A program made the translations under genes and the position numbers. This document shows positions 313-21,712 of a stretch of DNA of 64,000 bases, in pieces (position 1 is the first letter of the stretch; every line of letters begins with the position of its first letter). A model generated the notes under the pieces. The model saw only the letters and a list, made by a program, of their open reading frames with translations, searched no databases and was not told the DNA's origin. This stretch comes from Zygnema circumcarinatum SAG 698-1b (lineage: Eukaryota > Plantae > Zygnematophyceae). The DNA is taken from the NCBI GenBank assembly GCA_037447605.1, contig CM074813.1, positions 1-64,000 of the forward strand. The letters run 5' to 3'.

Positions 313-586
313 CAGTAAGCCCCCCCCACCCTAGTATTTGCGTTTCCCAAGAAATTCGCCTTGATTTTGAGGAAACAACTTTTAGTACGGTAAGTCTGTG
401 TTAATGTATTAGGGGTGTTAACCTAACCTGACCTGTTTTCCATTACAAAATCTGTTAATCGAAACGGATTTCAAACATGGGTCACGTTATTCCATTGTAT
501 GGTATGTACGAATAAAATCTCAAAATCGTACGGTATATGTACGGACCAATAGGAGCTTGTGGAGTTAAATGTACGACACCCATAGG
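313..586. mobile_element. Tc1/mariner-like MITE X, left part, interrupted by the 587-21704 insertion
   Basis: Starts TA|CAGTAAGCCCC. 403-586 is the reverse complement of about 22745-22925. It continues at 21713-21886, ending GAGCTACTG|TA. Confidence 0.7.
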
Positions 587-589
587 CAG

Positions 590-2330
590 TGTAGCACAAG
601 ATAAGTGGGGTTAAGAGGAGATCACGTCTACCAAGGTGCCTGCACGCAAGCAACCAGTGACCCTGGCCCCCAAAACTAACGGCGGGGCTGGATTGGGGTC
701 AGGGTCCGCTCGCAAAGATAGAGCCAGAACCGGGGATTCGTGAGGTACGGGTACCAAGACTTTTAGGGATCCTCAAGATGTGTTCCCGCCGCAGGGGCCG
801 GACTTGATGCTAAAAGAGCCCTCCCTTGTGTTCTCTCTTTTTCTGTTCTCTCTTCAGCTATTCTCTTTGCTAGGCTCCTAGTTATCATTGGTCATTGGGA
901 GGAATGGAAGGCAGGATACAGCAAGTTCAGAGCTTGGCATAGAGGCAGCAAAGGGAAGATAGGAATCAGCTTAGAAAAAGGGTGTGTCTTTGAAACTCAC
1001 CCCAGTCAGCGATTGGCTGGGGATTCTCATTACAATATAAGTGTCTTCTCACTGAAATGCTTGTCTGGCTGGGCTGAATGGGATGTCTAAATGCTATCAG
1101 CAAGAAGACTCTCTCTCTCTCTCTTTGTAGTGGAACTCTTTCTCTCTCTAACTAGCATCTGTTGCTGGAGCTTGAGAGGAAGAAAAGAAGAACAGGAAAA
1201 CAAACCACATAGCAAATACAAATACTAAGCCCAGCACTAAAAGACAAACTAGCATCACTGACATCCCATCTATCTATCTCTGACAGTAAATCCTGAGTCT
1301 TAGTAGTGACAGCCTCTGATTGGCCAACGGACCACTGAGTGGCCTGGCTGACTATGTGGAGCCTTATGATAGGTCAACTAATANNNNNNNNNNATGCGGG
1401 GGGGGGGGAAACAAGCGCACGCCCCGGCAGGCGCAATGAAGAAGAGAAGAAGGGAAGTGGAGGTCCAATGGAGGGATGTGGGATATCTGGATGCAATGTA
1501 GAGGTAGGGGGAGGAAGGAAGAGAGAGAGAAGAAAGGGCAGGGGGCCAGAGTGAGGATGACGAGCAGGAGTGAGGAAAAGTGGAGGAGACAGAATCCGAG
1601 AGGGAAGGAGGAAGTGGCGTAGACAATGATGATGGGGACGGAGGCAGCGGTGGGCGAGACGGTGGCCGTGGGGAGAAGCTCCCGCGTACATTCGTCAATG
1701 GGGAGGAGTGGCATGACCGCACTGCGGAAGCGCTGCATGGGGCCCTGGAAGGAGGAAGGATTCTGGAGTGTCCACAACGGAAGGAGGTGAAAGGAACTGG
1801 GGCTGCAGAGCAGAACGTCAGGTAGATGAACAGAAAGGGGAAGCGGTGGAAGTGAGGCAAGGGAAGTGGATGTAGCAAGAGGGAGAGGACTGTAGTGGGA
1901 AGAGAAGAGGAGAGCAACTGAGGTGGGGAGAGGAGGCTAGACTAAGGAATGCGGAGATTCAGAATTGATGCGATGCTGCAAGGATGGAAGGCTTGAAGTG
2001 AGAGGACAATCAGGGAGAAACTGAAAAAAAAGGGGGGGGCAGAATAAGCAGGCTAGAATTCAGAACCGAATTGGGAGGGAGAGGAGCAAGAACTGAGCTG
2101 GTGGGGTAGGGCACCGTGGCGAGTGGGAGAAAGTCCCGTGTAGTTTCTGTGATGGAGAGGCGTGTCATGGCCGCATCTGAAGAGGCTGCCGGGCTGACCT
2201 GAGTAGGTGGCACCCACGTGGAGGGGAAAGCTGGTGGATCCATGTGTTGAAGCAGGGGTCTGCTCCCCACTTCCGGCGCCACCTCGGGTGTCGCCCTCCA
2301 TTGGAACTTGAGTTCCCACGGATGAGGACA
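590..2330 (-). mobile_element. Ty3/Gypsy family B remnant: 3' LTR (about 590-1383) plus 3' internal region
   Basis: Inverted homolog of about 20200-21701. Shared blocks include GGGCTTAGTATTTGTATTTG, GTTATCATTGGTCATTGGGAGGAAT and GGGGGGGGGAAACAAGCGCAC. N-gap at 1384-1393. Confidence 0.75.
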
Positions 2331-2685
2331 TTCAAAACACTCAAAGCTCTATCTTACTTCACTCATCGCCCATAACAACAGAATGAAGCTACAAGACAAG
2401 CATAGCGGAAATCACAATGAGAGAGTGTTAGGAGAAAGCTCACGGCTCTAAAACTCCTTATAACAAAAGTGTCTTCCCACAATGAAGTTCTCCCACTACT
2501 TCAAGGTCCCTCTCACTCACTACCTCACGACGCAAGTGTAGGCAGCCTAGCAGCACGAGCAGGCACAGAATAAGACCCGAGACTATGACAGAGTAGTGTG
2601 GGTGGATTACTTCCCATAATAAAACTATGCACTATATAATATGGCGTCCGTGACGTGACACACATGTCACGTCGCGTCTGCCATT
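2330..2685 (-). repeat. Possible Copia LTR fragment
   Basis: Non-coding, with a TATA-like TATTATATAG on the minus strand. It lies downstream of a Copia RT fragment across an N-gap. Termini not confirmed. Confidence 0.3.
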
Positions 2686-2695
2686 NNNNNNNNNN

Positions 2696-3700
2696 AAGCT
2701 ACCGTCCTGCCTCCTCTTCAACTGCATTCCTAGGAGATACTGCGCCTCCCCTAGATCCGACATTTTGAAGTTAGCTTCCAAAAGCCGCTTCAAATCATTG
2801 ATTCTCTCCAATGAGAGGCTCACCATTATGAGGTCGTCCACGTAGATCCCAACGTACATGAGATCCGCCTCTTCTCCTTGTCGGTACACGGAATGATCCG
2901 TCTCGAATCGCGCAAATCCGTTACTCCGCAGGAGGTCATCAATTTTCTCGTACCAAATCCTGGGCGCCTGTTTCAGTCCGTACAAACTCTTCACAAGACG
3001 ACAAACGAGATGCTCCGCCTGAGTAACTTTCCCCTTCTAAGTCGCACTCACGTAGATCTCCTCACAGATCTCCGCATTTAAACGCGGCCTTGATATCGAA
3101 GCTGATGTACGCATCCCTCTACCGGCCGCAATTCCATATTGGGTGGCAATCTGAGGAAATAACTTCACCACAAGCGGCAAACCTGTAGTCGATTCGCACG
3201 CCTGGTTCAAGCCCTTCGCCACCGCGCCTTGTAACGTCGACATGGCCCGCTTCAGGCTTCACCTTGAACACCCACTTGCATCCAATGGCTCGCTTCCCCT
3301 CTCGGCAGCCTCCTCAAGCTCGCCACGCCGTTTCTCCAGCGAACCGCCCCACCAACATCGCCGCCGCCACTTCTCCATCGACCACAAGGCTACCCTCAAA
3401 GGTTTGCAGGCTCGGTGATCATAAAATAAGGCGCCCCGCTGGTGGTCCTCACTGACCAGAGGGCACTCTTTTCCTCAGACTAGGTTAGTCTCAGCGTAAG
3501 GCCTCGTAGTGATCGTGCCCTCACCACACGGGTGTTCTCCGAGGTCCTTTGCGCCTCCTCGCCTCGTGTTGAAGAAAACTCGACAAACCCGGAGGCATGC
3601 TCGCATAACATAAGCCTCTTTCGCCTCCAAATCCTCGCACTCTTCATGCAAAGGTACGCTTTGGCCGCAGTTCTCCTCGCCGACAAAGTGAAATACAGAA
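2696..3700 (-). pseudogene. pol: Ty1/Copia element 1: RT and post-integrase linker, fragmented
   Basis: KSLYGLKQAPRIWYEKID...YVGIYVDDLIMVS (Copia RT, YVDD). WVFKVK and LVAKG motifs at about 3200-3280. The linker is homologous to 10190-10280. Confidence 0.85.
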
Positions 3701-4387
3701 TAGAAGGTAACGCCAGGCTGCGACTTCGAGGCGCATTTCATATGATACTAAGGACTATCCCTTCATCTCGCCAAATGGATAGGTTAGACGCTGCCAAGAC
3801 CGCGGAGGTTTTGGGCTCATCCTTGTGGCGCGTAGCGATCTCTTTGATCGTGATCGGGTCGGTTGTGGGTAATGGACGCACCGACATACGGATCCTGCGG
3901 CTGTGAGGTGCCGGGCGCTGCTGCTGCCAAGAGGCTGCAGGCGCGCTGCCGCTCGGGCGGTAAAGTACTCCGCTGGTGATGCGGCGTATCTTTTGATGGG
4001 GTACTGGCCCTCAGACCGTGACGGATGTGGAAGCCGCGCGGCTGTGTCCGACTCCCGCCGGGGATTAGCCGCGGCGCCACAAGACGACGCACGCCAGCGA
4101 CGCCATCGCGCCCCGCGGCAGATGCGTGGGCGAGACCACGGGCGCTTGTCCTCACCGGAGCACCGGGTTAAGGATCACCACGCCGCTGGGCTCGATTGGG
4201 CAGCCCCGGCCCCGCGTCCTCCATGCCGTAGGGGTCTGGGCGGGGAGCTTGGGGGTCACGCGCCTCGATGGGAGAGACCATCCGGCTCTTTAGGCCTCAG
4301 CATTGAGCTCACGCTCCTCTCTCTCCCTCTCTCTCTTCTCTCCCCGGCTAATTTAGTTCGTAAATACTGGCCAAGTGTGGTGTTACA
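3701..4387 (+). repeat. 5' LTR of Ty3/Gypsy family A (left edge approximate)
   Basis: Homologous along its length to the reverse complement of 11712-12367. Ends GGTGTTACA and is followed by a PBS. Confidence 0.8.
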
Positions 4388-4388
4388 T

Positions 4389-4402
4389 TGGTATCGTGAG
4401 CC
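4389..4402 (+). promoter_or_regulatory. Primer-binding site (tRNA-iMet-like)
   Basis: TGGTATCGTGAGCC one base after the LTR CA end. The canonical iMet PBS is TGGTATCAGAGC. Confidence 0.75.
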
Positions 4403-5221
4403 GAAAGTTAGAGTTCGGCCTCTTTGGAGGGGCAAGACGCTGCTAGCCGCAGTTATGCTGAAAGCGCTGCCGGGCGTATGGGCGTCACGCCACTACCTTC
4501 CCCTTTCTCAAAGGGATTTCCTCCTCGGGAGGAGGACGCGGACATGGGCGCCAACCGTGGGCGCCACTTCGCACCCCATGGACACGGGCCCTGCTGCCCT
4601 GAATTCCCACGGCCTTCTTCGCGACGAGATCGGCGGCCTCAGCCGCCGCCGTAGGAGCAATAAGGCCGCAAACTCAAGCAGGAGTGCAGCGCCCACCTCG
4701 GCTGTAGGTCGGAGGGGCTACCCCCTCGGGCGGGTGAAATCTCACCACCCCCCAAAGTGAGTGGGGGGGTGCCCATCCCCAAGTGATGAAGTCCTCCGCC
4801 GAGCGGAGGCCAGCGCGGATAAGCGCTTTTCCGCTGGGCTGGAGGGAGGCGCCGGGCTCCTGGAAGGCAGCGCCACAAAGAAGACGCTGCTCCAGCCAGA
4901 ACGTGGAGCCCTCGGCGTAGATCTTGGAGCAGGCCGCAGAATCGAGGACCCTCCTCCACCCACTGTAAGTTTTACAACCTTCCTCTCAGTATTTGCCGAT
5001 ACAAAGAGGGAGAGGCGGCAGCCTGGGGAAGGGAGTCAAGTAGCCACTGTAGGTGTGTAGGGATTGTTGCCCGCCGCTTCTGCGCTGGCGTGGTCTGACA
5101 CGTGGGCGCCTGGGCCACGTAGGGCTGGGGCTCACCGCGCCGCTACCCTTCGGGCGGGAGCGTACCGCAGCTCGCTCTCTTTGAAGGAGGTGGCGGACCG
5201 CCAAAGAATCCTTTCCCCGCC

Positions 5222-5987
5222 GTGCTGGCGTGGACGGGCGACCCTACTGGGGTCCGGCCGCTTTCAGACCCTCCCCGGAAATCGGGCGTAAGGTCCTCCT
5301 CGACCCCTATGGGGGATCACCCGGCCGCATGCCGCCCAATTGGATCATTGGTCAGTGTGCGTGGGTACTTTTGTGCTACCCAATGCCCTCCCGATCAATG
5401 GGTGAACTTTGCTTCACCCGCTTTGAGGGGCGTGGCATGGAGCGTCTATGCCGGCCGCAAGGCGTTAATCGGCAAAGACTTTGAGAAGTTCGAGTCGGAA
5501 CTTCTCAAACACTTTGGCATCCTCGATCCCGCTGCCGGCAGACGTGGGATGTGTTCCAGCCGCCGCGCAGACTGAAGCGCGGGCGTAATTCCCTAATGGA
5601 ATTGCGGCGGCTTGGGCTTCGTACCTTCACATTGTTCCCACCGACCAAGAGTTCTTTTCTTCCGGGTTCACCATGGGATTGAAGCCAAGACGCTCGAAAT
5701 GCCTTCAAGCAAATCCTCGCATCTTTGGAACCTTGGGGACCTATGGATGATGAGCTGATGTTTGCAGCTGCAGTCCAAACTGACGTTGCGCCTACAGATG
5801 GTGCAGGGCCTTCCCGTCCCCCGCGTGCGGACACGGTCGAACAGCCGCGCAAAACTGGTGCGCCAGGCGGCCGACCTAAGGGAAATGGCAAGAGGAAATT
5901 TCCTTCCTCTCACCAGCAGCAGCACCAACGGCCACAGCCGCAAAAACTTGCTCCACAGGAGATGGAGGCTTTGCGCGCGGAAAACAN
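5222..5987 (+). pseudogene. gag: Family A gag, frameshifted or error-dense, cut by an N-gap at the zinc knuckle
   Basis: RGYFCATQCPPDQWVNFAS...FEKFESELLKHFG is a retrotransposon gag-like segment. 5700-5987 is near-identical to the reverse complement of 16770-17030. Confidence 0.7.
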
Positions 5988-5997
5988 NNNNNNNNNG

Positions 5998-7212
5998 GCA
6001 GTGATGCCTTAGTGCAATGTGCATTTGATGCCTTGCGCTTGCTGCGGTCGAAAGACCATGTACTCAGTTTACGAGTACTGCTCCCACAACACGTGGCAGT
6101 GAAGGCATATCCACAGACTGAGTGGAAAGTGGTAAAGCTTTGGAAGAAGGGCTTCTCCCTTCTTAGGTGGATGATTGGAGCTCCTACCACTGTGCTGGGG
6201 AAGTCTCCTCATCCCCTTGTGTGGCGGTTAGCTCGCCCCCACGCACCGAATGTGCTACGGTCCATTTTCCACTTGTCTCATCGTGCTATGACCTTCCAGG
6301 GTTCGGCCGATGGACACTCAGCAGTGGTTTTGCTGGACACTGGCGCGGACGCTAACTTTGTTAGCGCAGCCTTTGTCAGGACTGCGGGGTTTGCAGTCCA
6401 GCCTCATTCCGATAGTGTAACTTTCGGGGATGGACGCACGGGCCAGATTTCTGGCAGCGTCAGCGTGAAATTGAAGATTCAGTCTTACTCCGGGGTGGTC
6501 AACTGCTTGTTGACGTTATTAGCCCCAGGAACAGACTTGATCTTGGGGAGCAAATGGCTGACGCTTATGGGCGCTCAGTTAGATTTTGTTGTCCCTAATT
6601 GCGTCCTCCGCAGTGAAGGGAGACGCATGACTCTGCAACCAGGCACTCCTTCGGGACCAGCCTCGTCGCGGTCATCTTTGTCGTTTCTGTGCTCCGCCAT
6701 GCAATTGGGCAGAGCACTAAAAACGAGTAGCATCTTGTTTATGGTGCAAGTCATGACGGCAACCGAGGACGCTCATGACGGGGACCAGGAGTGGCAACCC
6801 ACTGCGGGTGAAACAATGCCAACTGTCCCAACTGTGTTTCAACCCTTGTTGAAAGCGTTTGAGGATGTATTCCCAGACGATCTGCCAAGGGGTCTGCCTC
6901 CAGCCAGAGGGGTGGGGCATACCATACCCCTTGAGCCAGAACAGAAACCTCCTTGGAGGCCTATCTATAGGCTTAGTCCGAAGGAGACTGAGGAGATGCG
7001 AAAGCAACTCGCTAACCTGCGTGAGAAGGGCTGGATTGAGCCCAGCCAGAGTCCCTTTGGGGCTCCCATCCTCTTCGTTGGTAAGAAGGATGGGTCTTTG
7101 CGAATGTGCATCGATTATCGAGCACTCAATAAGATCACGGTAAAGAACAGGTTTGCTTTACCGCGCATAGATGATCTTCTGGACCGTCTGCAAGGGGCGA
7201 AGGTGTTCACCT
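5998..7212 (+). CDS. pol: Family A pol: aspartic protease plus N-terminal RT, truncated
   Basis: [13 protein letters not shown] (protease). PIYRLSPKE...[54 protein letters not shown] (Ty3/Gypsy RT). Confidence 0.9.
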
Positions 7213-7262
7213 ATGCTCAGAGATCACGGTGTTTTTAGGGTGGATTACAAATACCGGGCACT

Positions 7263-7275
7263 GGCTCTGATACCA
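7263..7275 (-). promoter_or_regulatory. Perfect tRNA-iMet PBS on the minus strand
   Basis: The minus strand reads ...CCGTACA-T-TGGTATCAGAGCC, a 13-nt canonical PBS after an LTR-like CA end at 7277. Confidence 0.6.
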
Positions 7276-7404
7276 ATGTACGGAACCCGTTCCTTAGTGG
7301 CCTGAGGGGCTAAGGCTGTAGTCCATGTGTTGAAGGAGCTTGAACGCTGCTCGTGAAAACCCTTGAGTGCGCTCGAGGACGAGCCCGGTTTAGGTGGGGA
7401 GGAA

Positions 7405-7534
7405 TGTAGCGAAACGCTATACATGTGTTGTATGGCCTAGTACTTACATCCGCGGTTGCCTTTTAATGGTAAAGCACTGGTGTGGGTACCGGGAGGTCTT
7501 GTGTTCAAACCTTGCAGTTGGCAGGTTTGTTACA
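7405..7534 (+). repeat. Short (130 bp) LTR with family-A-like termini, preceded by a PPT at 7392-7404; contains a tRNA-like segment
   Basis: AGGTGGGGAGGAA|TGTAGCGAAACGCTA ... TGTTACA, compared with family A AGGGGGGAGTAA|TGTAGCGTAACGCTA ... TGTTACA. Copia sequence resumes at 7535. Confidence 0.6.
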
Positions 7535-8161
7535 GTAGTGGTGCCGTCTCCGTCGAAGGTTGCGGCTCCCCCGCTTGCGGCTCCTCGGGTTCAACTCCCA
7601 CGGCCGCCTCCACGTTCGGCGTTGCTTCCAGCTCAGCTCCCTCGCTCTCTGGCGTGCTGATCTCCTCTGAAGCTGGGACCTGAGAGGCGTCCATGCCCTC
7701 TTCGCTGGTCTCCACATCCTCGTACACAATTTCTAAACCTGCCTTTGGGGTGCGGGTCTCACCTAGCCGAGTCACCGCCCCCTTCTCATCCACCGTAACG
7801 TCTCTCGAGCTCTGTACTTCGTTTGCTCGAGGGTTCCACACCCGGTAGGTGCGACTGTCCATGTTGTAGCCGAGAAGGTACCCTTCCANNNNNNNNNNCC
7901 CTCATCTTCTTCTCTCCTATAATGAAGGTAATACAGGCCTCCCTTCTCGTACCCCTCAAACAGCCGCTTCCCCGATTCCAAGTGAGTAGCTACGCAAGAC
8001 TTCTCCTTAAAGGTGACTTCGTACCCCCTCTTACATACTTGACTAACTGACATGAAGTTCTGTTTCAGATCAGGGGTGTGAAGTACGTCACCGATGCACA
8101 ACCGCTCTTCTCTTTCTTCTTCGTGGATGACAGAGCCGTCTCCGAGGATCATCTTTACTAC
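7535..8161 (-). pseudogene. pol: Ty1/Copia element 1, continued: post-integrase region and protease fragment
   Basis: YLLGYNMDSRTYRVWNPRANEVQSSRDVTVDE. VLHTPDLKQNFMSVSQVCKRGYEVTF...GGLYYL. It resumes at about the point where 3700 stops. Confidence 0.85.
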
Positions 8162-8171
8162 NNNNNNNNNN

Positions 8172-8393
8172 TAGTTGACCTCGTCACAGTCCGCGGACCG
8201 CACTAAGGGTCTGACGCGGGTCCGCCGACATCACCGACTTCTCCGCGCCCGAAAAGCGTACGGGCCACCGACATTTGGCCCGACCGTATTTCCTAGGACT
8301 ACTACTAGCAGATCTCATGTTTCCCAACTGAGGACCACAACGATGTTAGTGTGAACCCATACAATGTCTAACTATAACACACTAACACTAACA
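8172..8393 (-). repeat. Copia element 2, 3' LTR (partial), with PPT at 8394-8404
   Basis: After the RNase H stop at 8410 the minus strand reads AAGAGGGGGAT|TGTTAGTGTTAG. Confidence 0.75.
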
Positions 8394-8409
8394 ATCCCCC
8401 TCTTGGGAC

Positions 8410-11400: not shown

Positions 11401-11711
11401 GCGTTCGGCCACGGCCATCGCATCTTCATCCTCGTCTTCTATAATGAAGTATCTGAGACCTCCCTTCTCCTTACCCCTCAACGGCCCGGCTTCCCGTCCT
11501 TTGCATGAGTAGCTACACAAGACTTCTCCTTGAATGTGATCTTGTACCCCCTCGTACACACCTGGCTAACAGACATGAAGTTCTGTTTCAGCTCGGGGGT
11601 GTGGAGTACATCACCGATACACAAACGCTCCTCTCTCTCCTCTTTGTAGATGACAGAGCCGTCTCCGAGAATCATCTTGACTACTCCACCCTTCGTGACT
11701 GTCACTCCCTC
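8410..11711 (-). pseudogene. pol: Ty1/Copia element 2 pol: protease part, GAG-pre-integrase, integrase, RT, RNase H; many frameshifts
   Basis: RNase H TDNQSSIALVENPVFHKRTKHIRVQYHYVRE...AADMLTK. RT IYVDDLII. Integrase CKECVEGKAHRKPF...LELVHTDLCGP...FLDDFSRK and PQSNGAAERVNRTL. Domain order is Copia-type. Interrupted at 11711 by a family A LTR. Confidence 0.9.
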
Positions 11712-12367
11712 TGTAACACCCTGCCCCCTGGCAGGCTGCTCTGAGAGTCTAAGTGTCAGGAGAGGAAGAGAGAGAGAAAAGAGCGTGAGCTCAATGCTGG
11801 TACAAAGAGCTCGGATGGCCTCCCATCCGGGCGCAGCCCCCTTAAGCTCCCCCCTTCGAACCCCCTACCAGCATGGAGGACGGGGCGGGACTGCTTAATC
11901 GAGCCGCCCGGCGTGGCGTGTGATCCTTAGCCGAGTTATGGGCTGAGGACAACCGATGGTCTCGCCCATCATCTCCCGGGAGGCAGCGTCGCGTCGCAGC
12001 GGCGCGCCGTCGTCACCGGCGGCTGCTGCGGCCTAAGTCGGCCAGTGGGGCACAGCCGACCCGTCGTCGTACGGGCCGTGCCTAATCAAAAGATGCGCGC
12101 GCATCTGCGTGGAGTGCCCGTCGCGGCCATCTTGGCGGCGGCTGAATCTCCGGGCGGCGGGATCCGCTCGTCGGTGCGTCCGTACATGCATGCAGGGGCG
12201 ACCCGATCACGATCAAAGAGATCCTTTGCCGCCACAGGATCGAGGCCCAAGACACTCCTGCGGTCTTGGCGGCGTCCTAACTTTCTATCCGTAGAAGCGA
12301 GATGAAGGGATGATCATAGTATCACTATGAGTACGCCTCCAGGGTCACGCTGTAGCGTTACGCTACA
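11712..12367 (-). repeat. 3' LTR of family A minus-strand copy (656 bp), PPT at 12368-12379
   Basis: The minus strand reads AGGGGGGAGTAA|TGTAGCGTAACGCTACA ... GGTGTTACA. Confidence 0.85.
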
Positions 12368-12401
12368 TTACTCCCCCCTGTGAGTACGTGAACGCCCTCG
12401 T

Positions 12402-13967
12402 TCACTGGGGAAAAGTAATCTTGGCAGCCCGCAGTTTAAGAGGTATTCGTCTCTGTCTGCGGGGTGTACGGGAGGGCTCAGCGTTAATCCCGGTCAAGTC
12501 CCTTTCCGAGTAGCGCGTGGACGGTTCGGGAACCCCCCTAGCCGCCCTCGCCCGCTCACCAGCGGTCTGCGCCTCCCAGTACAATCTCAGGAGCTCCTTG
12601 CAATTTGTCAGATTGCTCTCACGTTCCCACGTGCTATGTTCAACCCCATAGCCCAACCATTTCACGAGATATTCGTGGCGGGAAGTCTGACCTCTACTCA
12701 CAGTCCTGTGGGTTTGGATGGTCTCTACCTCATACTCGAGGTCACCCTCAACTTCCACTGGAGGGGGAGGTGGTTGGACTCTCCCATCGCTGCGGTATGC
12801 CTTAAGAAGACCCACGTGAAAGACCGGATGCACTTTCATATGAGCCGGTAAAGCCAACCGGTAAGCGACCTCACCGATTCGCTTCACGACCGAAAAAGGT
12901 CCCATGAAGCGAGGCCACAACTTACGGGTTCCGCCGTAAGTCTTCAGGCGCAAGTTCGACGTGCTCAGCAGTACCTGATCGCCTACAGCGAAGGTTAATG
13001 CAGCACGACGACGATCAGCATAGGCTTTCTGCCGCGACTGGGCTGCTAACAGGGTCTGCCTTGCCCTCTGTAACGCCTCGGACATTTTCCGAGTGAAAGC
13101 ACTAACGGCGGGAGGTTGACTCCCGCCAGCTCCTCTCATGCCCCAAGGATCTGGGAGCCTGTGAACATCCATGTTCCACACATTTGGCTGCTGATCTCTT
13201 GGCTGCAGGGGATTTAGAGGATGCTGACCAAAGTTTAAGAAGAAGGGAGTGGTACCGATTGATTCCTGGAATGCATTATTAATGGCATACTCAGCCACCG
13301 GGAGCAGTTCATCCCATCCATCCGGGATGGGTCCCACATAATGTCTCAAATAGTCTTCCAGAATCCGGTTCACCCGCTCAGTTTGGCCATCCGTCTGAGG
13401 GTGGAAGGCTGTACTCATAGCCTGCTTCGTCCCGATAATCCGGAGGATTTCTTTCCAGAAATGGCCGGTGAATCGGGTATCACGATCTGAGATGATCTCA
13501 GATTGAAGTCCATGCTGACTCCAGACCTTGTCAACATATAGCCGTGCTATTTCGTCGGCACCCGCCGTCTTAGCAGTGGCTGCAAAATGCACCATTTTGC
13601 TCAGGCGGTCGACAAACACGAGGATGGAGTCAAAACCCCGAGCTATCACAGGTAAATCTATGATCAAATCCATACCCACACTCTCCCACTTCCGATAAGG
13701 AGGGGCGAGGGGCTGGAGCAAGCCAGGCACAGGTCCCGTGCGAGGCTTATCCCGCTGACAAGTTGGGCATGCGAGTACATACGCCTCCACGTCCGCTGTA
13801 ATTCCGGGCCACCAGAATTCTCGGAGCAGTGCTTCACGGGTTTTGGCAACTCCCATATGGCCCCTGTACGGAGGATCGTGCATCTCACTCAGTATGAGCT
13901 GCCGTACAGATCCAGCCTTGGGTACGACTAACTGCTTATCGTGGTACCAAAAACCGTCCCGAAGCAC
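12402..13967 (-). CDS. pol: Family A integrase with zinc-binding HHCC, DDE core, GPY/F and chromodomain (intact ORF)
   Basis: HDPPYRGH...CPTC. MDLI...VDRLSK...SDRD...HPQTDGQTERVNR. RFMGPFSV. EYEVETI...YLVKWLGYGVEHSTWE. Confidence 0.95.
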   Translation of the reverse strand: MLRDGFWYHDKQLVVPKAGSVRQLILSEMHDPPYRGHMGVAKTREALLREFWWPGITADVEAYVLACPTCQRDKPRTGPVPGLLQPLAPPYRKWESVGMDLIIDLPVIARGFDSILVFVDRLSKMVHFAATAKTAGADEIARLYVDKVWSQHGLQSEIISDRDTRFTGHFWKEILRIIGTKQAMSTAFHPQTDGQTERVNRILEDYLRHYVGPIPDGWDELLPVAEYAINNAFQESIGTTPFFLNFGQHPLNPLQPRDQQPNVWNMDVHRLPDPWGMRGAGGSQPPAVSAFTRKMSEALQRARQTLLAAQSRQKAYADRRRAALTFAVGDQVLLSTSNLRLKTYGGTRKLWPRFMGPFSVVKRIGEVAYRLALPAHMKVHPVFHVGLLKAYRSDGRVQPPPPPVEVEGDLEYEVETIQTHRTVSRGQTSRHEYLVKWLGYGVEHSTWERESNLTNCKELLRLYWEAQTAGERARAARGVPEPSTRYSERDLTGINAEPSRTPRRQRRIPLKLRAAKITFPQ

Positions 13968-15409
13968 GAGCTTGTTCTTATAGCCATTGCCTTGGCGTCG
14001 GGAACAAAGGGATCACCCGATTGTACCCCTCACGGATCTCATCACCATGCGAAATCGAGGAGAGGAAGCGGGGAGGGTTGAAGGCTGGCGTCGGTGGAGG
14101 GTTTATGACAAAACATCTTTGGAGATATGGCAGCTGGGTTGGCGACGCCGTCTCCACCATCTGCATTACCACCAACACTTTCGAGTCGGCCTTGGCGCAC
14201 CATCGAGGCTAGATGAATGGGTGCTTTTGCTTTCGATGGGTCCGCTTCATTCAGCCTCCGGGCACACGTATACCCGCTGCGTCGAACCGTTGGAGAACTC
14301 AGACGGCGTGCCTGCCGCCTGAAAGAGTGGCGAGAGGTGGAGAGGAACGTCAGTGGACGGTGGTCCGTGACCAGCGTGACTGCCACCGCCCCCTCCAAAT
14401 AGCAACGCCATGTCCTCAGGGCGTGAACCACAGCCAAGAGCTCTTGCTCTGTGGCGGAGTAGTTTCGCTCAGCTGGGTTCATCTTGCGACTTTCAGTAAG
14501 CAAGAGGTTGGTCGTCTTGGAACAAGACCGCACCCAAAGCGAACCCCGAAGCGTCACATACCACTTCATATGGCAACCGCGGATCAGCCAACCTCAACGT
14601 AGGTGCTGTCACAAGCGCATGTCTCACACCATCAAATGCCGTCTGGCACTCTGGTGTCCATGCATACGCGACACCGGAACGTGTCAAATTGGTAAGAGGT
14701 GTTACCAACTTACTAAAGCCTTGGATAAACTTACGAAAATAATTCGCAAATCCAAGAAAAGACCGCAACTGATGAAGATCAGCCGGTACAGCCCATGTCT
14801 TTACAGCAGACACCTTGGCTGGATCAGGTTTCAGTCCCTGATCGTTCAAGATATGCCCAAGATACAACAACTCTCGTTGCATGAAGTTACACTTCTTTCG
14901 CTTGGCATAAAACGTGTGTTTTCGCAACACCTCGAACACTTTGCGTACATGCACAAGATGTTCAGCGTCCGTCTTGCTGAATACCAGGATATCATCCAGG
15001 TAGACAAGGACAAACTCATCCATGCCGACGAACATTTCGTTCATCACAGCTTGGAATGTAGCCGGAGCGTTGGTCAGTCCAAAAGGTAGCACCTTGTATT
15101 GGAAGTGACCAATTGGCGTCGAAATGCGTCTTAGGAACATCCGGCATCCGTGACGCACGGATGCGATGGTACCCTAGCGCAGGTCGGCGAGGTGAACACC
15201 TTACGCCCCGCTGCGAGGAGACGGTCGAGAGGAGTCCATCTATCGCGGTAAAGCAAACACGATTTCGCTGCGGAAGTGATCTTGTCGAGTGCTCGATGTC
15301 GTGCATTAGCAAAGACCATCCCTTCTTACCAGCGAAGAGGATGGGAGCCCCCGAAAGGGACTCTGGTGGGCTCAATCAGCCCTTCTCCGCGTCAGGTTAG
15401 CGAGTTGCT
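13968..15409 (-). pseudogene. pol: Family A RT and RNase H, frameshifted or error-dense
   Basis: FQYKVLPFGLTNAPATFQ...VYLDDILVFS (YLDD). CDASGFALGAVL. NYSATEQELLAVVHALRTWRCYL...TDH. Confidence 0.9.
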
Positions 15410-16693
15410 TTAGCATATCCCTCCGGTCTCGGGACTAAGCCTATAAGATAGGCACGCCAAGAGGTTTCTGATACGGCTCAAGGGGGTATGGTACACTTTA
15501 CCCCTCTTGGTAGGCCGACCCTTAGCGAATCGATGCGGGAATACATCCTCAAACGCTTTCAACAAGGGTTGAAACACAGTTGGGACAGTTGGCATTGTTT
15601 CACCCGCAGTGGGTTGCCACTCCTGGTCCCCGTCATGAGCGTCCTCGGTTGCCGTCATGACTTGCACCATAAACAAGATGCTACTCGTTTTTAGTGCTCT
15701 GCCCAATTGCATGGCGGAGCACAGAAACGACAAAGATGACCGCGACGAGGCTGGTCCCGAAGGAGTGCCTGGTTGCAGAGTCATGCGTCTTCCTTCACTG
15801 CGGAGGACGCAATTAGGGACAACAAAATCTAACTGAGCGCCCATAAGCGTCAGCCATTTGCTCCCCAAGATCAAGTCTGTTCCTGGGGCTAATAACGTCA
15901 ACAAGCAGTTGACCACCCCGGAGTAAGACTGAATCTTCAATTTCACGCTGACGCTACCAGAAATCTGGCCCGTGCGTCCATCCCCGAAAGTTACACTATC
16001 GGAATGAGGCTGGACTGCAAACCCCGCAGTCCTGACAAAGGCTGCGCTAACAAAGTTAGCGTCCGCGCCAGTGTCCAGCAAAACCACTGCTGAGTGTCCA
16101 TCGGCCGAACCCTGGAAGGTCATAGCACGATGAGACAAGTGGAAAATGGACCGTAGCACATTCGGTGCGTGGGGGCGCGCTAACCGCCACACAAGGGGAT
16201 GAGGAGACTTCCCCAGCACAGTGGTAGAAGCTCCAATCACCCACCTAAGAAGGGAGAAGCCCTTCTTCCAAAGCTTTACCACTTTCCACTCAGTCTGTGG
16301 ATAAGCCTTCACTGCCACGTGTTGTGGGAGCAGTACTCGTAAACTGAGTACATGGTCTTTCGACCGCAGCAAGCGCAAGGCATCAAATGCACATTGCACT
16401 AAGGCATCACTGCCCATGGCATTCAAGATGATGACATGCCATTCTTTCATCAAGACAGCATTCGGAAATGCTGTTGGAGTCACAAGCATAGCAGGTGGCA
16501 ATGAATAATCAGCAGGGAATGCATCGCACACAAACAACAGATTCCCGCTGAAAACTCCCCCAATCACTTTAAGAATGTCATCCGCCCTTGGAATACAACA
16601 TTCTACACTAGTGATGGCAGCTAATGCGCTGCCCCCCCTACTGTCAAGCCCACCAGCAGAGACCCCTAAGCTGCCGGTGGGGAGCCGTTTTCC
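15410..16693 (-). CDS. pol: Family A pol N-terminus and protease, in the -1 frame relative to gag
   Basis: [12 protein letters not shown]. The frame is open upstream through the gag stop to a TAG at about 16713. Confidence 0.85.
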   Translation of the reverse strand, partial: GKRLPTGSLGVSAGGLDSRGGSALAAITSVECCIPRADDILKVIGGVFSGNLLFVCDAFPADYSLPPAMLVTPTAFPNAVLMKEWHVIILNAMGSDALVQCAFDALRLLRSKDHVLSLRVLLPQHVAVKAYPQTEWKVVKLWKKGFSLLRWVIGASTTVLGKSPHPLVWRLARPHAPNVLRSIFHLSHRAMTFQGSADGHSAVVLLDTGADANFVSAAFVRTAGFAVQPHSDSVTFGDGRTGQISGSVSVKLKIQSYSGVVNCLLTLLAPGTDLILGSKWLTLMGAQLDFVVPNCVLRSEGRRMTLQPGTPSGPASSRSSLSFLCSAMQLGRALKTSSILFMVQVMTATEDAHDGDQEWQPTAGETMPTVPTVFQPLLKAFEDVFPHRFAKGRPTKRGKVYHTPLSRIRNLLACLSYRLSPETGGIC

Positions 16694-17117
16694 GCCGGCC
16701 CTTTCCCCTTCCTATCCTTCTTGAAAGATGGGCAGTCATAAGACCTATGCCCCACTTTCCTGCAACGGAAACACTTGTTTTCCGCGCGCAAAGCCTCCAT
16801 CTCCTGTGGAGCAAGTTTCTGCGGCTGTGGCCGTTGGTGCTGCTGCTGGTGAGAGGAAGGAAATTTCCTCTTGCCATTTCCCTTAGGTCGGCCGCCTGGC
16901 GCACCAGTTTTGCGCGGCTGTTCGACCGTGTCCGCACGCGGCGGACGGGAAGGCCCTGCACCATCTGTAGGCGCAACGTCAGTTTGGACTGCAGCTGCAA
17001 ACATCAGCTCATCATCCATAGGTCCCCAAGGTTCCAAGGTACGAGGATTCAGCCGAAGCTGTTTCCGAACGTACGGCTTCAATCCATGGCTGAACCGGAA
17101 GAAGAATTCTTCGGGTC
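16666..17117 (-). CDS. gag: Family A gag C-terminus with CCHC zinc knuckle, cut by an N-gap
   Basis: CFRCRKVGHRSYDC, stop at 16666. Confidence 0.9.
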
Positions 17118-17127
17118 NNNNNNNNNN

Positions 17128-20100
17128 ACTTTGCTACGTGTCAGCTGTACTTATCTGTTGGCGGGACAGACTGCTCCTTCCCCATCATCCTCGAGTCCCT
17201 TGCCACCTCCGCCTTCCCCAAACGCCACGCCACGGCGCAGGTCTCCTACCCAGAGATCACCATGTACCATGCGGTCGGCAGCCTCCATTCTTCCTATGGA
17301 TCGGCCAATTCTAATACCGATGGTGAGACTTCCCCTCCTGCTCCCCCGAATCCAGCCCTCTATGCGCCGACGGAGGAACTTTGGCCGCCGGTGCTCGCTG
17401 CACCCAGCTTCCCCGCCCACGAGATCATCAGTGATGAAGAGTGGCTGGAGATAGAGGGTCAGATGCGATTGGGGCCAGCAGTACTCTCAGACCCGATCAA
17501 GCATTCTCAACTACGCCAAGTGCTGCGCCGAAATCACCTAGTTTTCGCACGACAACCACTCGACATCGGCAAGACCCACCTGATTGAGCACCATATCGAT
17601 ACGGGGGATGCACCTCCCGTGATGACCATGACTCCCTACCGCTTTTCCGCCGCTCAGCAGGCCGATGTCGAACGACAGATCGACGAGAACGTGGCAGCCG
17701 GCTTGATGGAACCCGGAGAAGGGCCTTGGGCCAGCCCGGCCGTTCTCCCCCCAAAGCCGGATGGCACACCCTCGCCTCGCTGTGACTATCGAAAAACCTA
17801 ATGCCATATAACGGCTGATCCTTATAATGCTACCGACGACCTATTCTCCACGGCGCTCTAAGGACCGATGGTTCTCTACCGACATGTGTCCTTTTGGTGC
17901 ATCCCCATGACAAAATGACGGGCCAGAAGATGGCACACGCCCACGCTGCGGCAGCTGGACGGTGCTTCCCTTTTGCTCACAGAATTCCCAGCCCAGACCT
18001 CACCTCAAAATTGCTCCCTGCCAACCAGGTGTTCGCCCTCTCGTGCCTTCTCATGAACCTTACGCTGATGATGCTTCCTCCACGTTAGCGACTGTCCTCC
18101 CACCCCAACACATTGACCAAGTCCTTCAACAGCTCATCAGTGCGCGTCTGAAGATTGCACCCAAGAAGTGCAAATGGGGCCACCAAGAGATCACTCATCT
18201 CGGGCACCGCCTCGGCATCAATGGCCTAAAACCATCACTCGACAAAATTGAAGCGATTGACCTTATGCCCATTCCACAGAACCTCACTCAGCTCAAGTCT
18301 TTCTTGGGACTCACCTCATTCTATCGCCGGTTCATCAAGGGCTATGCCCTTATCGCGCGTCCCCTACATGCCTTGGAGAAGCACGGAGTCCACTACGAAT
18401 GGAGCCGAGCGCAGGATCTGGCCTTCCGGCGCTCAAGAGTGCCCTTCTTCGTGCTCCTTGTCCGCATTCACCACCCACCGCCCACCATTATCGACGCCGG
18501 ACCGAGTCAGACAGTTTGGGGTCGTGGCCAGTCAAGCATTCTGGATGGGGAACACCCGTCAGTTATGCTAGCAGGGTTTGTTCAGAAACCGAGACCAAGT
18601 ACAGCCCTACTGAGGGTGAGGCCGCGGCTATCCTCTGGGCACTCGAGAAGTTCAAGCTCTTCACGGCCTACCAGCCCATTATCATTAGGACTGACCACAT
18701 GCCACTCACTTGGCTGCACATCATGGCTACCCTACGACCTTAGTTTGCACGATGGGTGATGAAGTTGGAGGAGTATAATGTACTTAAGGTCACTCACCGT
18801 CCCGGCCGTAGTCACGGCAATGCTGACGGCCTCAGTCGCAATCCCTCGGCTCCCCTCCTCTGTCACGATCCGGCCGTTCCTGAACCCATCCCTCCACCCA
18901 CCCTCTTGAACCCTGAGCACCTTCCCATTGAGATTTTCATTGCAGATCAAGACTTACATGATGTCATATTCGCGGATGGGCTGATCGATATTCCGGCCAC
19001 GGCCACCACCCTCCATCGCTGGCAGGACCCTGACTTCACCCACGGCCACCCCCATGCAGATCCGTGGGAACTCCTCAGGGATGACGATGGCGAAGCTCCC
19101 TTTCTTCCTCCCCATTTCCCCAGCCAATGACGCCCATTCCACTCTCCCCTTCACAAGTACGCCATGACCCGCATATTGCCCCTTTTTGTCACGGTAACAC
19201 CGAGGGCTCGGGTTGTTCCGCCAAGGCCGGCACTTTCCTGCTGATGATGAAGGATGCATTCTCTGCCCTCCGCCTTCCCCTGCTCTTTCCCCAACAAACG
19301 CATGAGATCCCCGGATGTCGCCCCACGATTCCCGGGCGGATTCCACCTGGGCCAAGAAGCGGTCGCCTGGCCGCGAAGAGCGCTATTATTGGCCCGCTCT
19401 CCATGGCGCCGTGAGCCGCTATATCGAAACCTCGCATCTGCTGCTAACGCTGCAAGCGCATCTGCCTTCCCCGACCGCCAACCCTCGGAGATGGGTGAGA
19501 TCCCCATACGAGGCGTCGCCGAAGATTGGAACATTGACACCTTTTCTATCCCCCAGCTCGGCACCCCCTCTGGCTACATTCGGGTCTTCCTAGCCGTGGA
19601 CAGATACACCAAGTGGGTGGAAGTTCATGCGACAGAATCTAAGCATTCCATACACTCTGCTCGCCTCCTGACGGCCATCATTCACCGCCACTCTCTCCCC
19701 TACTCTGTCCACTCTGACAATGGCACCAAATACAAGGGGGCATTTGCCAAGCTCATGCAAGACTTCCGCATCATTCACCACACCTCTAGCCCCTACTCCC
19801 CCTGGCATAATGGGCTTGCAGAACGCACTCATACAGCATCGTCAGGATGCGGGCACCAAGGCCGCTGAGCCGGGAGGCGGACGCCGCAGGTCATCCCTCC
19901 CCGGTTCACGCACAACACCTTCCGCTCACTCCTCCACCGCTTCTCCCCACGAAGCCTCTATGGCCGTAAGCCCCGTGATTCCCTTTGACCTCCTCTCGCT
20001 GAAGCCCCTTCTTTCCACGCATGACGCCAGCCCCCGGATCGTGTCGCTTCAGCCAGCCTCGCCTCCGCTTCCAAACTTAGACTTCCATGGCTCACCACCA

Positions 20101-20300
20101 ACGCCAAGACAGCGGTATAACTCACCGACTGAGGCGCCGACGCGCCGCTTCTCCCGCCTAATCAGTCGCGCCATCGCCACCATTTGGCTCGTGAATCTCG
20201 CCTAAACCGACTCAACGGCTTTTCCGTGGTTGGGCCCCTTCATTTGTGCCGGTCCGTCGAGATCCTGTGCTGGGGCCATCATTTCGAGGGCTCCTCCCGA
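17128..20300 (+). pseudogene. pol: Ty3/Gypsy family B pol (RT, RNase H, integrase, GPF), frameshifted; 5' end lost at an N-gap
   Basis: DIGKTHLIEHHIDTGDAPPV..PYR. PWASPAVL. ARLKIAPKKCKWG..ITHLGH. YSPTEGEAAAILWALEKF..RTDH. AVDRYTKWVE...HSDNG...PWHNGLAER. PWLGPF. Confidence 0.9.
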
Positions 20301-20707
20301 CTCTAGTGGGAACGCCTGGCGCCGGGCGCGCTCACACCGGATCGACACATTCTCGTGCCGCCATGTCACGCCGTTCTCCCCGCCATGGCTGACCGCTAGC
20401 GACCGGCCGCCGACCTCCCTCCGCACCGCCATGACAATGCCCGCTGGTCCATTTCTAATTCCCGCCGCCAATTCTGCCCTTCCCGCCACTTTTTTGCCCC
20501 TTCGCCCACATTTCGCCGGCCGGCCGTCTCTTCCGATACGGTCCTCCCGATACTCCCCATTGCCGAATGTACGCGGCAGCTTCTCCACACGGCCACCGAC
20601 TCGCCTCCCGTCCACGTCATCATTGGCTCCTCCACTGCCCTTTGTCTCTTCTTCATTGCGCCCGCAGGGGCGTGCGCTTGTTTCCCCCCCCCGGCATGTG
20701 CTACAGA

Positions 20708-21701
20708 TGTAGCGTAACGGAGCTGCGCTCGACGGATCCGCGTCCGTTCAGTTGTACTTGACATATTCATATTCAGTGTCACGGACCGGCATAATCCAGG
20801 AGTTGCCGACGGAAAACGCGGTGAAGCGGCGCCACGCGCTATGCCTAATGAATCCAAGACACCATCCAAAGAAGGCGCACTGAACACCGCCAAGGCCGCC
20901 GACATCATTCGCTGACTCCATCCAAAGGCCTAATGAGGTCGGCCAGGCCTCTCGCGGGCGGTTGGCTAATCGTGGCCTCGCCAATCGCTAAGGCTCAAGA
21001 TCTATTGTCGGGCACTCCGTGATGGGATGTCATGATGCTTGTTTATGAAGTCGGGCTTAGTATTTGTATTTGCCGGTGGTTTGCTTTTTCGTCTTGTTCT
21101 TCTTTTCTTCCTCTTCGCCCAAAAGCAATGCATGCTAAGTGAGAGAGAGAGAGAGAGTTCCATGCCATAGATAGAGAGAGAGAGAGAGAGAAAGAGTCTT
21201 CTTGCCGCATAGCATTTAGACGCCCCATCGAGCCCAGCGAGACAGAGATCTGAGAGAGAAGATACTTTCAGTGTAGTGACATTCCCCAGCCAACCGCTGG
21301 CTAGGTGACTTCTTCAAAATACAACCTTATCTAAGTTGAGTCCGCTTTGCCGTCACAATGCCAAGCTACCATCTTGTTCTATCCTGCCTCACATTCCTCC
21401 CAATGACCAATGATAACTAGAAGCCTAGCTAAGAGACTAGCCGAGGAGAGGACACAAAGGGAGTGAGAGCCCAAGGAAGGGCTCTTGCTCATCGAGTCCA
21501 CCGTGGGAACATCTTCGATCCCTACGCTGGGCCAAGGTATTCTGAATCTCCGATCCTCGCTCTATGCCGGCAGTGCACTCCACAAAGACCAACCCAACCC
21601 TTCATCGCTTCAAGCATTTAATGCCGCTGAAAGTGGCCGTGACAAAGACTGCAGAATTCAGCTCTCGCTAGCTCTTTCAACCCCACTTATCTTGTGCTAC
21701 A
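20708..21701 (+). repeat. 3' LTR of family B (994 bp)
   Basis: TGTAGCGTAACGGAGCTGCG ... CCCCACTTATCTTGTGCTACA. Both termini match the two ends of the 41001-42680 copy. Confidence 0.8.
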
Positions 21702-21712
21702 CTGCCCATAGG

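Follow-up and report, generated by a model that had tools for sequence, protein, structure and literature searches.

Background

hAT elements are recognized by an 8-bp target duplication, by short terminal inverted repeats (TIRs, 10-25 bp) starting with YARNG, by a transposase or by ends and subterminal repeats shared with an autonomous hAT element, and by multiple copies that have identical ends but differ in their duplications. During their canonical excision the flanks form hairpins, and no bases of the transposon stay behind. In rice, foreign filler DNA was found after 58 of 94 transposon excisions, with both copies of the duplication perfectly kept in eight of the 94 and with natural fillers of 1-123 bp (PMC4423477). 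For yeast, the accounts of Teng et al. (1996) and Moore and Haber (1996), so far as they are relayed in PMC11372161 and PMC1976456, describe the capture of Ty1 cDNA at chromosome breaks; the captured pieces measured 140 bp to 5.6 kb, and a single break could take up more than one of them (PMC1976456).

Here we analysed a window of 64,000 nucleotides (the whole stretch of DNA under study) from Zygnema circumcarinatum SAG 698-1b, in which a 21-kb block had been predicted to carry a hAT-like signature with TIRs made of LTR-retroelement ends. The signature proved to be real and not a chance match, given the 8-bp duplication, the CAG...CTG ends that fit YARNG and an empty site, while neither of the two mechanisms originally proposed for it, co-opted LTR ends or retroelement insertion just inside both TIRs, gained support. 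We consider repair of a chromosome break at this site, a process known mainly from yeast experiments, the likeliest origin of the block, which would then be neither mobile nor a new type of giant transposon. Under either reading, an 8-bp duplication together with CAG ends is insufficient to call a hAT element.

Junctions of the block and the empty site

The block interrupts a copy of the MITE-like host repeat X, and its edges consist of the following features.

326-578, no strand: left half of the MITE-like host repeat X, matching the reverse strand of 22745-23004 at 82% identity; colinear in the empty-site alignment
579-586, no strand: left copy of the 8-bp duplication, CCCATAGG (repeat scan and empty-site alignment)
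587-589, + strand: CAG between the duplication and the LTR end, missing from the normal B copy at 41001
21702-21704, + strand: CTG, mirror of the left CAG
21705-21712, no strand: right copy of the 8-bp duplication (repeat scan and empty-site alignment)
21713-21785, no strand: right half of X, agreeing in 55 of 73 columns with the paralog just past the latter's single 8-mer
22678-23004, - strand: paralogous X copy serving as empty-site stand-in, with a single CCAATAGG at 22745-22752

As predicted, the direct repeat is exact at both positions, and the two flanks, joined through a single 8-mer, form one X copy colinear with the reverse strand of the paralog (81% identity over 338 columns). Both flanks of the block hold the 8-mer variant CCCATAGG, whose counterpart in the paralog, CCAATAGG, is present only once. 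The perfect 26-bp inverted end was likewise borne out: the ends are laid out as CAG-TGTAGCAC...GTGCTACA-CTG, and the 23-mer TGTAGCACAAGATAAGTGGGGTT at 590-612 recurs as its exact reverse complement at 21679-21701, where the number of matches expected from shuffled sequences was 0. The end thus starts with CAGTG, and 23 of its 26 bases are the terminus of the family B LTR described below. The four bases outside each LTR end read CTGC in element orientation on both sides. When the whole window was scanned for any 8-bp direct repeat bracketing at least 12 of 14 inverted terminal bases, the CCCATAGG pair was recovered along with six other matches, all arising secondarily from internal repeats that are inverted or weakly similar; of these six, five sit around palindromic 8-mers inside the A/A' repeat.

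Family B arms and the reference copy

Both arms of the block consist of the 3' LTR and the 3' internal part of a Gypsy family, here called B, with their 3' ends facing outward.

590-1383, - strand: 3' LTR of the left arm (B_left), 3' terminus outward, cut by the gap 1384-1393; its terminal 23 bases equal those of B_right
1394-2244, - strand: internal region of B_left just upstream of its 3' LTR (matches to the reverse strand of B_right)
17128-20707, + strand: internal region of the right arm (B_right), with reverse transcriptase (RT) 17262-18759, RNase H 18399-19130 and integrase core 19254-19868
20708-21701, + strand: 3' LTR of B_right, 994 bp, starting TGTAGCG and ending GTGCTACA, its start set against the 41001 copy
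41001-42680, - strand: reference B copy with direct LTR ends and the duplication GCCT, collapsed by two gaps

Bases 4-26 of the inverted end are the 3' terminus of the B LTR, as had been noticed, and the copy at 41001 shares this end with one extra A. That copy also has no CAG and carries its own 4-bp duplication (GCCT at 40997-41000 and 42681-42684), as claimed; its target reads AGGC in element orientation, at a site unrelated to the block junctions. Since B integrase makes 4-bp duplications without CAG, the 8-bp duplication is not the work of this integrase. With its direct TG...CA LTRs and 4-bp duplication, the 41001-42680 copy places B among Ty3/Gypsy elements, as does the domain order RT-RNase H-integrase in B_right, where all frames are broken. 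The block as a whole is not a single Ty3/Gypsy element: its LTRs are inverted and 71-74% alike, and its duplication is 8 bp long.

The arms derive from two diverged B copies (about 71-90% identity). Positions 718-1382 of B_left are 71% identical to the reverse strand of 20907-21565, and its internal stretches 1400-1470 and 1599-1730 are 90% and 74% identical to the reverse strands of 20621-20692 and 20530-20649, respectively; the internal region of B_right is 80% identical to the B copy at 41203-42279. Past base 26, about 170 bases of the two arms are almost unalignable, after which they are 71-74% identical up to 1383. The 26-bp identity therefore reflects a terminus conserved within the family, with three bases added, and does not mark a recent inverted duplication; all three B copies preserve the 23 terminal bases but not the adjoining 170. 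About five frame breaks occur in 2.6 kb of B_right, which would need only some 2% divergence and would be compatible with 34 still-perfect terminal and duplication pairs.

B_right has no polypurine tract, and GTGCTACA-GA stands directly before its LTR; a search of the block for a second GTGCTACA-GA-TGTAGC site found none. The window shows no junction between a B 5' LTR and its primer site; in the 41001 copy, this stretch falls in the gap 42284-42488. The window also contains no tRNA genes that might bear on the primer site. Searches for more B copies reached no more than 53% identity, across one third of the query, among homologous proteins and about 46% among protein representatives, a route by which the alga's own elements are beyond reach. 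Neither the LTR terminus nor a conserved LTR core had an exact match in the metagenome contigs scanned.

Interior of the block, assembly gaps and read support

The interior consists of retroelement debris, namely, two Copia elements, two chromoviruses and one small LTR element.

2245-8161, - strand: Copia-2, gap-collapsed, with nested elements (Pfam RVT_2, Pol_BBD; 70-83% identical to Copia-1 in the same order)
2245-2685, 2632-2994 and 7535-8161, - strand: parts of Copia-2, being an LTR-like high-copy repeat, RVT_2 and the integrase/Pol_BBD region, respectively (Pfam; contig depth profile)
3728-7212, + strand: chromovirus fragment C_left, LTR-like at 3728-4339 and gag-protease-RT start at 5647-7212 (protease, RVT_1 start)
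7270-7534, - strand: small LTR with an adjoining primer-binding-like site, TGGTATCAGAGCC, read from the sequence
8344-11684, - strand: Copia-1, RT at about 9275-9870 and SH3_retrovirus integrase part at 10062-10763
11758-17111, - strand: chromovirus C_right, LTR 11758-12339, integrase-chromodomain 12402-13967, RNase H, RT, protease and zinc knuckle (Pfam)

C_left matches 15190-17111 in inverted orientation at 93-99% identity, and the + strand part of the small LTR (7405-7534) starts with TGTAGCG, as B does. In agreement with the original prediction, no transposase lies inside the block: its 30 ORFs of at least 120 aa gave only retroelement domains in Pfam, and ten further ORFs in the window outside it held no hAT transposase domain. 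The assembled interior showed no hAT body, and the two subterminal 270 bases share neither a motif nor any meaningful 6-8-mers. Within the window, the block thus shows neither a transposase nor subterminal repeats shared with an autonomous hAT element.

Each of the six N gaps in the block probably conceals sequence, for which four of them offer direct or by-comparison evidence, so that 21 kb is the minimum length of the block. Logan contigs of two runs (X1, 457-615; X2, 458-616) span the flank, the 8-mer, CAG and the LTR end with 0 differences. They cover the left junction only and extend 29-30 bases past it, just below the 31-base rule applied, and the two runs belong to one study and may represent the source sample. 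Contigs stop at 2244, where the high-copy repeat starts, and none bridges a gap in 1-5990. One further contig links position 33 to position 587, with CAG, so that this end adjoins a different MITE-like flank. It reads ACA-CTG-GTTCC, possibly the junction from a B 5' LTR to its primer site or else a MITE flank; in place of the contig's CAG the MITE itself has CGG, which makes this second context ambiguous. The leader-like part of this contig matched only the window's own bases 12-33 when compared with the window.

Origin of the block

We tentatively favor, at somewhat short of even odds, a reading in which a cut-and-paste element with an 8-bp duplication left this one locus and the break was patched with two B reverse-transcription intermediates. 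A hAT-like element making 8-bp duplications would once have sat in X at CCCATAGG, creating both 8-mers, and would then have excised or broken, with both 8-mers staying on the chromosome ends. By analogy with yeast, each chromosome end would have been joined, free of integrase, to the free U5 end of a B intermediate consisting of a 3' LTR and a variable upstream stretch, and the two ragged inner ends would then have been joined together. CAG and CTG might stem from the very ends of the departed element, with joining at TG/TGT microhomology, or might be cDNA-only bases past the LTR end (the spacer plus the start of the primer-binding site). Later, other LTR retrotransposons nested inside and the B reading frames decayed. 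If the block arose by such repair, the 26-bp end would be B's conserved 23-base integrase-binding terminus present twice plus three bases, and not a transposase site.

Several observations are in line with capture at a break. Both arms comprise a 3' LTR with upstream internal sequence and end at the U5 terminus, as cDNA capture requires; the empty site can be reconstructed; and the block holds no transposase, shared subterminal motif or hAT body. On the other hand, the supposed resident element left no trace unless CAG/CTG is its remnant, and since canonical hAT excision leaves no element bases, an element-derived CAG would need a non-canonical step. If CAG came from cDNA instead, its identity with the commonest hAT terminus would be a coincidence of a few per cent. 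The rice data also weigh against capture, both duplication copies being rarely kept perfect (8 of 94 excisions) and natural fillers being 1-123 bp rather than kilobases. Furthermore, two different B subfamilies must have been captured simultaneously, the inner junction between the arms is hidden by nested elements and gaps, and the contigs point to at least one further context for CAG plus the B_left end, where a one-off repair predicts none. That second context would be reconcilable with repair if it is B's 5' LTR-to-primer-site junction or a chance flank. If break repair is correct, the locus represents a clean natural case, in a land-plant relative, of a transposon-made break patched with retrotransposon intermediates, and large transposon nests can be seeded in one step.

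The proposal that two outward B LTR ends bearing CAG served as TIRs for a hAT-type transposase supplied in trans, so that the whole nest was inserted as DNA, appears unlikely to us. It draws on the exact 8-bp duplication, the YARNG-fitting CAG...CTG and the perfect 26-bp inverted end, and on the contrast between an old, decayed interior and perfect ends and duplication. The left-junction contigs stop at 615/616, and the other contig hints at a second context of the CAG-bearing end, but this context is ambiguous and could be supplied by a flank by chance. The idea of co-opted ends nevertheless fails to gain ground: throughout both arms everything inside CAG is B LTR, and the ends have no common subterminal motif. 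Nor could the composite be shown to exist in a second copy. No autonomous partner is known, with none in the window, and CAG-plus-LTR ends would still need a separate event, twice and in mirror image. Ac and Buster hATs have the target patterns nTnnnnAn or nnnTAnnn, and the duplication fits neither. It is quite doubtful, too, that B's conserved 23-base U5 terminus plus CAG works as a TIR for a hAT-type transposase and that head-to-head retroelement pairs move as giant non-autonomous transposons. Were the nest indeed moved in this way, a DNA transposase could use retrotransposon ends, blurring the two main mobile-element classes, and there would be a route to very large mobile cargos and a functional bridge between LTR ends and DNA-transposon ends.

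Improbable, in our judgment, is a resident hAT element hit twice by B, the hits straddling the element-flank junctions with 4-bp duplications GCAG/CTGC and 3' ends outward. Ordinary enzymes would then account for CAG/CTG and the 8-bp duplication, and the arms from different B subfamilies and the CTGC outside both LTR ends in element orientation would be explained. However, two mirror-image events of single-base precision are required, and the normal B copy sits at an unrelated AGGC site, not at such a target. The version in which B inserted 3 nt inside both TIRs found no backing, as neither a B 5' LTR start nor a CTGC-TGTAGC junction nor any hAT body is seen in the assembled interior, although gaps could hide them.

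Aberrant integrase action, either on a head-to-head B cDNA dimer via a pair of unprocessed U5 ends or through two separate half-site joinings spaced by 8 bp, is very improbable. Retroviral integrases can use two U5 ends in vitro, and both ends here are exact U5 termini with the same three bases, like unprocessed cDNA ends. But duplication length is set by the integrase complex (4 bp for B), integrase joining needs a processed CA end so that extra bases should be lost, and several anomalies must coincide.

There is equally little to be said for an assembly artefact in which a scaffolder joined junctions from different loci. The presence of six gaps, the lack of internal support for the joins at 8162-8171 and 17118-17127, and the absence of contigs across any gap in 1-5990 would permit it, but the flanks share the CCCATAGG variant and rebuild one colinear X copy, the left junction was read exactly in two runs, and homologous elements are colinear across the joins at 1384, 2686, 5987 and 7889. 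An assembler hairpin is ruled out, as the flanks are not mutual reverse complements and the arms are diverged. We also rejected an in-situ inverted duplication, since the arms are 71-74% alike while the 34 terminal and duplication pairs are perfect, and recombination between two B-carrying X copies, which would presuppose X variants in which exactly 8 bp separate CAG from CTG.

Comparison with known systems

Polinton, DIRS and Ginger membership was rejected on the required domains or duplication lengths. Ginger elements share TGT...ACA ends related to Gypsy integrase substrates, but they make 4-5-bp duplications and have no reverse transcriptase, whereas this block has an 8-bp duplication and contains RT and RNase H. 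DIRS-like elements are also retroelements with inverted terminal repeats, but they use a tyrosine recombinase and make no duplications, whereas here we found a DDE integrase, an 8-bp duplication and no recombinase domain among the block ORFs. Non-autonomous hAT elements and Ac/Ds macrotransposons resemble the block in their 8-bp duplication, CAG...CTG ends, large size and cargo unrelated to transposase; however, known examples retain complete hAT TIRs together with subterminal repeats for transposase binding, and only three non-LTR bases are present here. Excision fillers in rice similarly retain both duplication copies around foreign DNA, a common repair outcome, but a filler at the present locus would comprise two retroelement pieces, one no shorter than 1.65 kb (1.9 kb when the gap is counted) and the other no shorter than 4.6 kb, which nesting later enlarged. 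Captured Ty1 cDNA differs in setting, since the present locus is a natural green-algal site with an intact 8-bp duplication on both sides and two mirror-image fragments with identical 3-base extensions of putative B cDNA origin; as far as the cited accounts describe them, the Ty1 inserts are, as the arms of this block would be, independent of integrase, rich in 3' LTR and extended by a few extra bases past the LTR end.

The block is an insertion with an exact 8-bp duplication

The retroelement nest at 579-21712 (hereafter the block) splits X, a MITE-like host repeat. The features on which the original prediction was built, an exact 8-bp duplication and a perfect 26-bp inverted end, are present as described, with two copies of CCCATAGG, CAG/CTG and exact inverted 23-mers.

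Junction features of the block
579-586, 8-bp duplication, left copy CCCATAGG
587-589, CAG, directly inside the left CCCATAGG
590-612, 23-mer TGTAGCACAAGATAAGTGGGGTT
21679-21701, exact reverse complement of TGTAGCACAAGATAAGTGGGGTT
21702-21704, CTG, between the right LTR end and the right 8-mer
21705-21712, 8-bp duplication, right copy CCCATAGG

In a search of the window, TGTAGCACAAGATAAGTGGGGTT occurred within three mismatches only at 590-612 and 21679-21701 (0 expected from shuffles), and direct reading revealed a variant longer by one base at 41001. A window-wide scan for any 8-bp direct repeat around at least 12 of 14 inverted terminal bases recovered the block's pair; the six further matches arise incidentally from internal repeats that are inverted or weakly similar, and five of these matches surround palindromic 8-mers within the A/A' repeat. 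Joined with a single 8-mer, the two flanks rebuild one X, as had been claimed, and are colinear with the paralogous X copy at 22678-23004 (reverse strand) at 81% identity over 338 columns (218/265 left of the junction and 55/73 right of it). Since this paralog carries one CCAATAGG, the block is a genuine insertion with an exact 8-bp duplication. The left junction is also found in Logan contigs from two runs of one study (457-615 and 458-616, 0 differences); these reach just 29-30 bases beyond the junction, their sample may be the source of the assembly, and we count them as confirmation of the assembly and not as independent biology.

Host-repeat MITEs at 1-80, 22380-22470 and 42800-42860 have Tc1/mariner-like ends, CAGTG...CACTG beside TA, and a common module, GGTT-GGCAAAAT-GGCGAA. 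At 26482-27100, a 14-base unit stands in more than 30 tandem copies (core 99% identical). Of the long ORFs tested outside the block, just one gives a clear host-gene signal, an ABC-2 type transporter membrane domain (62051-62725, reverse strand).

Both arms are 3' parts of family B

The outer arms of the block, B_left and B_right, belong to family B, a Ty3/Gypsy LTR retrotransposon.

Family B features
590-1383, reverse orientation, B_left LTR
17262-18759, forward strand, B_right RT, broken frame
18399-19130, forward strand, B_right RNase H, broken frame
19254-19868, forward strand, B_right integrase core, broken frame
20708-21701, forward strand, B_right LTR, 994 bp, starting TGTAGCG and ending GTGCTACA
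41001-42680, reverse strand, reference B copy, LTR start and end in direct orientation

The reference copy, which is mostly collapsed by gaps, gives the family ends as TGTAGC...GCTACA with a 4-bp duplication; as predicted, it has its own duplication (GCCT at 40997-41000 and 42681-42684) and no CAG. Both this copy and the block, the two fully seen B insertions, sit in CAGTG...CACTG MITEs. Positions 1400-1470 and 1599-1730 of B_left align in reverse complement with 20621-20692 (90%) and 20530-20649 (74%), a region of B_right just upstream of the 3' LTR; thus, each arm consists of a 3' LTR and 3' internal sequence, with its 3' end outward. Beyond the common 26 bases the arms are nearly unalignable for ~170 bases and then just 71-74% identical, which rules them out as recent duplicates of each other. 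The 23-base terminus is retained in all three B copies while the adjoining U5 is variable, so that inverted-end bases 4-26, correctly assigned to the 3' terminus of the B LTR, are a feature conserved in the family, presumably as the integrase site. A special explanation is required only for CAG/CTG and the 8-bp duplication, which would arise by chance in two unrelated insertions with a probability of ~2 in 10 million. Age does not separate the hypotheses: all 34 terminal and duplication pairs are identical, ~2% divergence suffices for the ~5 frame breaks seen over 2.6 kb of B_right, and at that divergence all 68 sites would stay unchanged with a probability of ~0.3.

At 20660-20713, no polypurine tract precedes the 3' LTR of family B; in its place stands a C-run followed by GTGCTACA-GA-TGTAGC. 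This string repeats the final 8-9 bases of the LTR, adds two bases and continues into the LTR start, giving a palindrome that resembles an LTR-LTR circle junction; the same C-run lies in B_left (1397-1420, reverse strand). The GCTACA-GA-TGTAGC arrangement may reflect unusual plus-strand priming or an att arrangement.

Interior of the block

The 30 ORFs of at least 120 aa in the block yield solely retroelement domains (Pfam), in line with the claimed absence of a transposase inside; neither a transposase nor a recombinase was found among them or among 10 more ORFs outside the block.

Elements nested in the block
2632-2994 and 7772-8203, reverse strand, Copia-2, RVT_2 and Pol_BBD
6012-7238, forward strand, chromovirus fragment nested in Copia-2, protease and RT start
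7270-7534, reverse strand, small LTR of ~250 bp, adjoined by T and a TGGTATCAGAGCC site
8344-11684, reverse strand, Copia-1
11758-17111, reverse strand, chromovirus, integrase-chromodomain, RNase H, RT, protease and zinc knuckle

The TGGTATCAGAGCC site resembles a primer site of the tRNA-Met type. On the forward strand, 7405-7534 begins with TGTAGCG, as family B does, and ends in GTTACA, and the small LTR may be a TRIM-like element using B-type ends. The chromovirus gag-protease-RT start forms an inverted repeat (5647-7212 and 15190-17111, 93-99% identity) whose copies lie near-symmetrically, ~5.1 and ~4.6 kb from the block's ends, whereas the LTR-like parts next to it (3728-4339 and 11758-12339) are just 69% alike; gene conversion, a recent copy or assembly duplication could account for it. 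Contig depth over 800-1383 and 2245-2800 is 30-600x the summed depth of the B_left internal region, indicating that the CT-repeat-rich inner LTR part and the Copia-2 LTR-like repeat come from very abundant families.

Possible origins of the block

We tentatively favour the patching of an excision site or break with two B cDNA intermediates, at somewhat less than an even chance. Mobilisation by a hAT-type transposase of two B LTR ends bearing CAG, the first mechanism originally proposed, agrees with two hAT criteria, the 8-bp duplication and the CAGTG start; however, everything inside CAG is LTR, no motif is repeated in both subterminal regions, no partner element is known, and the mirror-image double origin of the CAG-plus-LTR ends is left unexplained, so that we consider it unlikely. 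The second, in which B inserted twice into a resident hAT element, each time 3 nt inside a TIR, leads one to expect a hAT body in the centre and B 5' LTRs with GCAG/CTGC at their borders. Neither was found in the assembled interior, although gaps could conceal them, and the normal B copy at 41001 has no such target; this mechanism appears improbable.

Gaps in the block
1384-1393, ~215 bp missing relative to B_right
2686-2695, contigs extend with unlike sequence on both sides
5987-5996, ~361 bp missing relative to 16414-16776
7889-7898, ~780 bp missing relative to Copia-1
8162-8171, unrelated elements joined
17118-17127, unrelated elements joined; should conceal at least the chromovirus 5' LTR

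Neither continuity nor reading frame is maintained across any of the six gaps, and the block exceeds 21.1 kb. At the first four joins, the two sides are colinear with homologous elements, making the left 8 kb a coherent chain, while the last two have no internal support, as would suit a scaffold artefact uniting junctions from different loci; yet the left-to-right linkage comes from the scaffolder and from the strong argument that flanks and duplication rebuild one site, and such an artefact is very improbable. Since B integrase makes 4-bp duplications, the insertion is not its work, and an aberrant integrase event is hardly to be expected. Part of the probability falls to none of these five readings.

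Returning to the patch with B cDNA, hAT-type excision leaves exactly a site flanked by two 8-mer copies, and incomplete minus-strand cDNA comprises the 3' LTR and an upstream stretch of variable length, its single defined free end being the U5 end. A hAT-type element would have excised, leaving an 8-mer on either side, and each chromosome end would have joined the U5 end of one incomplete B cDNA, which would give two back-to-back 3' parts with U5 outward, as observed. CAG/CTG might be the departed element's last bases, joined at TG/TGT microhomology; since the TIRs match each other and so do the LTR ends, this microhomology would be equal on either side. Alternatively, they might be cDNA-only bases, a one-base spacer followed by TG from a TGG primer site; the window contains no junction of a B 5' LTR with its primer site.

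Other evidence cuts against the patch. The Logan junction contigs end at 615/616, which in a 31-mer graph means that elsewhere in the genome 587-616, CAG included, also follows another base, and one low-depth contig (15.9) of run X1 joins MITE-like sequence resembling window 1-33, plus GGAAC, directly to 587. This second context may reflect another insertion of a unit ending in CAG, favouring mobility; B's own 5' LTR junction, ACA-C-TGGTTCC (TGGTTCC presumably resembling a tRNA-Glu primer site), favouring cDNA-only bases; or an ordinary B insertion into a MITE with CGG where the contig has CAG. The contig joining 33 to 587 could stem from a second locus, from a variant within a subpopulation or from an adjacent deletion. 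The locus is real and unusual, yet single.

To our knowledge, natural fillers of kilobase size are rare. Perfect retention of both duplication copies is uncommon (8/94 in rice, PMC4423477), and both points count against a patch. In favour of a patch, filler DNA was present in 58 of the 94 rice excisions (PMC4423477). In yeast, Ty1 cDNA is captured at breaks by end joining, with a hotspot in the 3' LTR region and cDNA-only extra nucleotides in 40/56 such inserts (PMC11372161); the Ty1 fragments so captured measure 140 bp to 5.6 kb, with more than one per break possible (PMC1976456).
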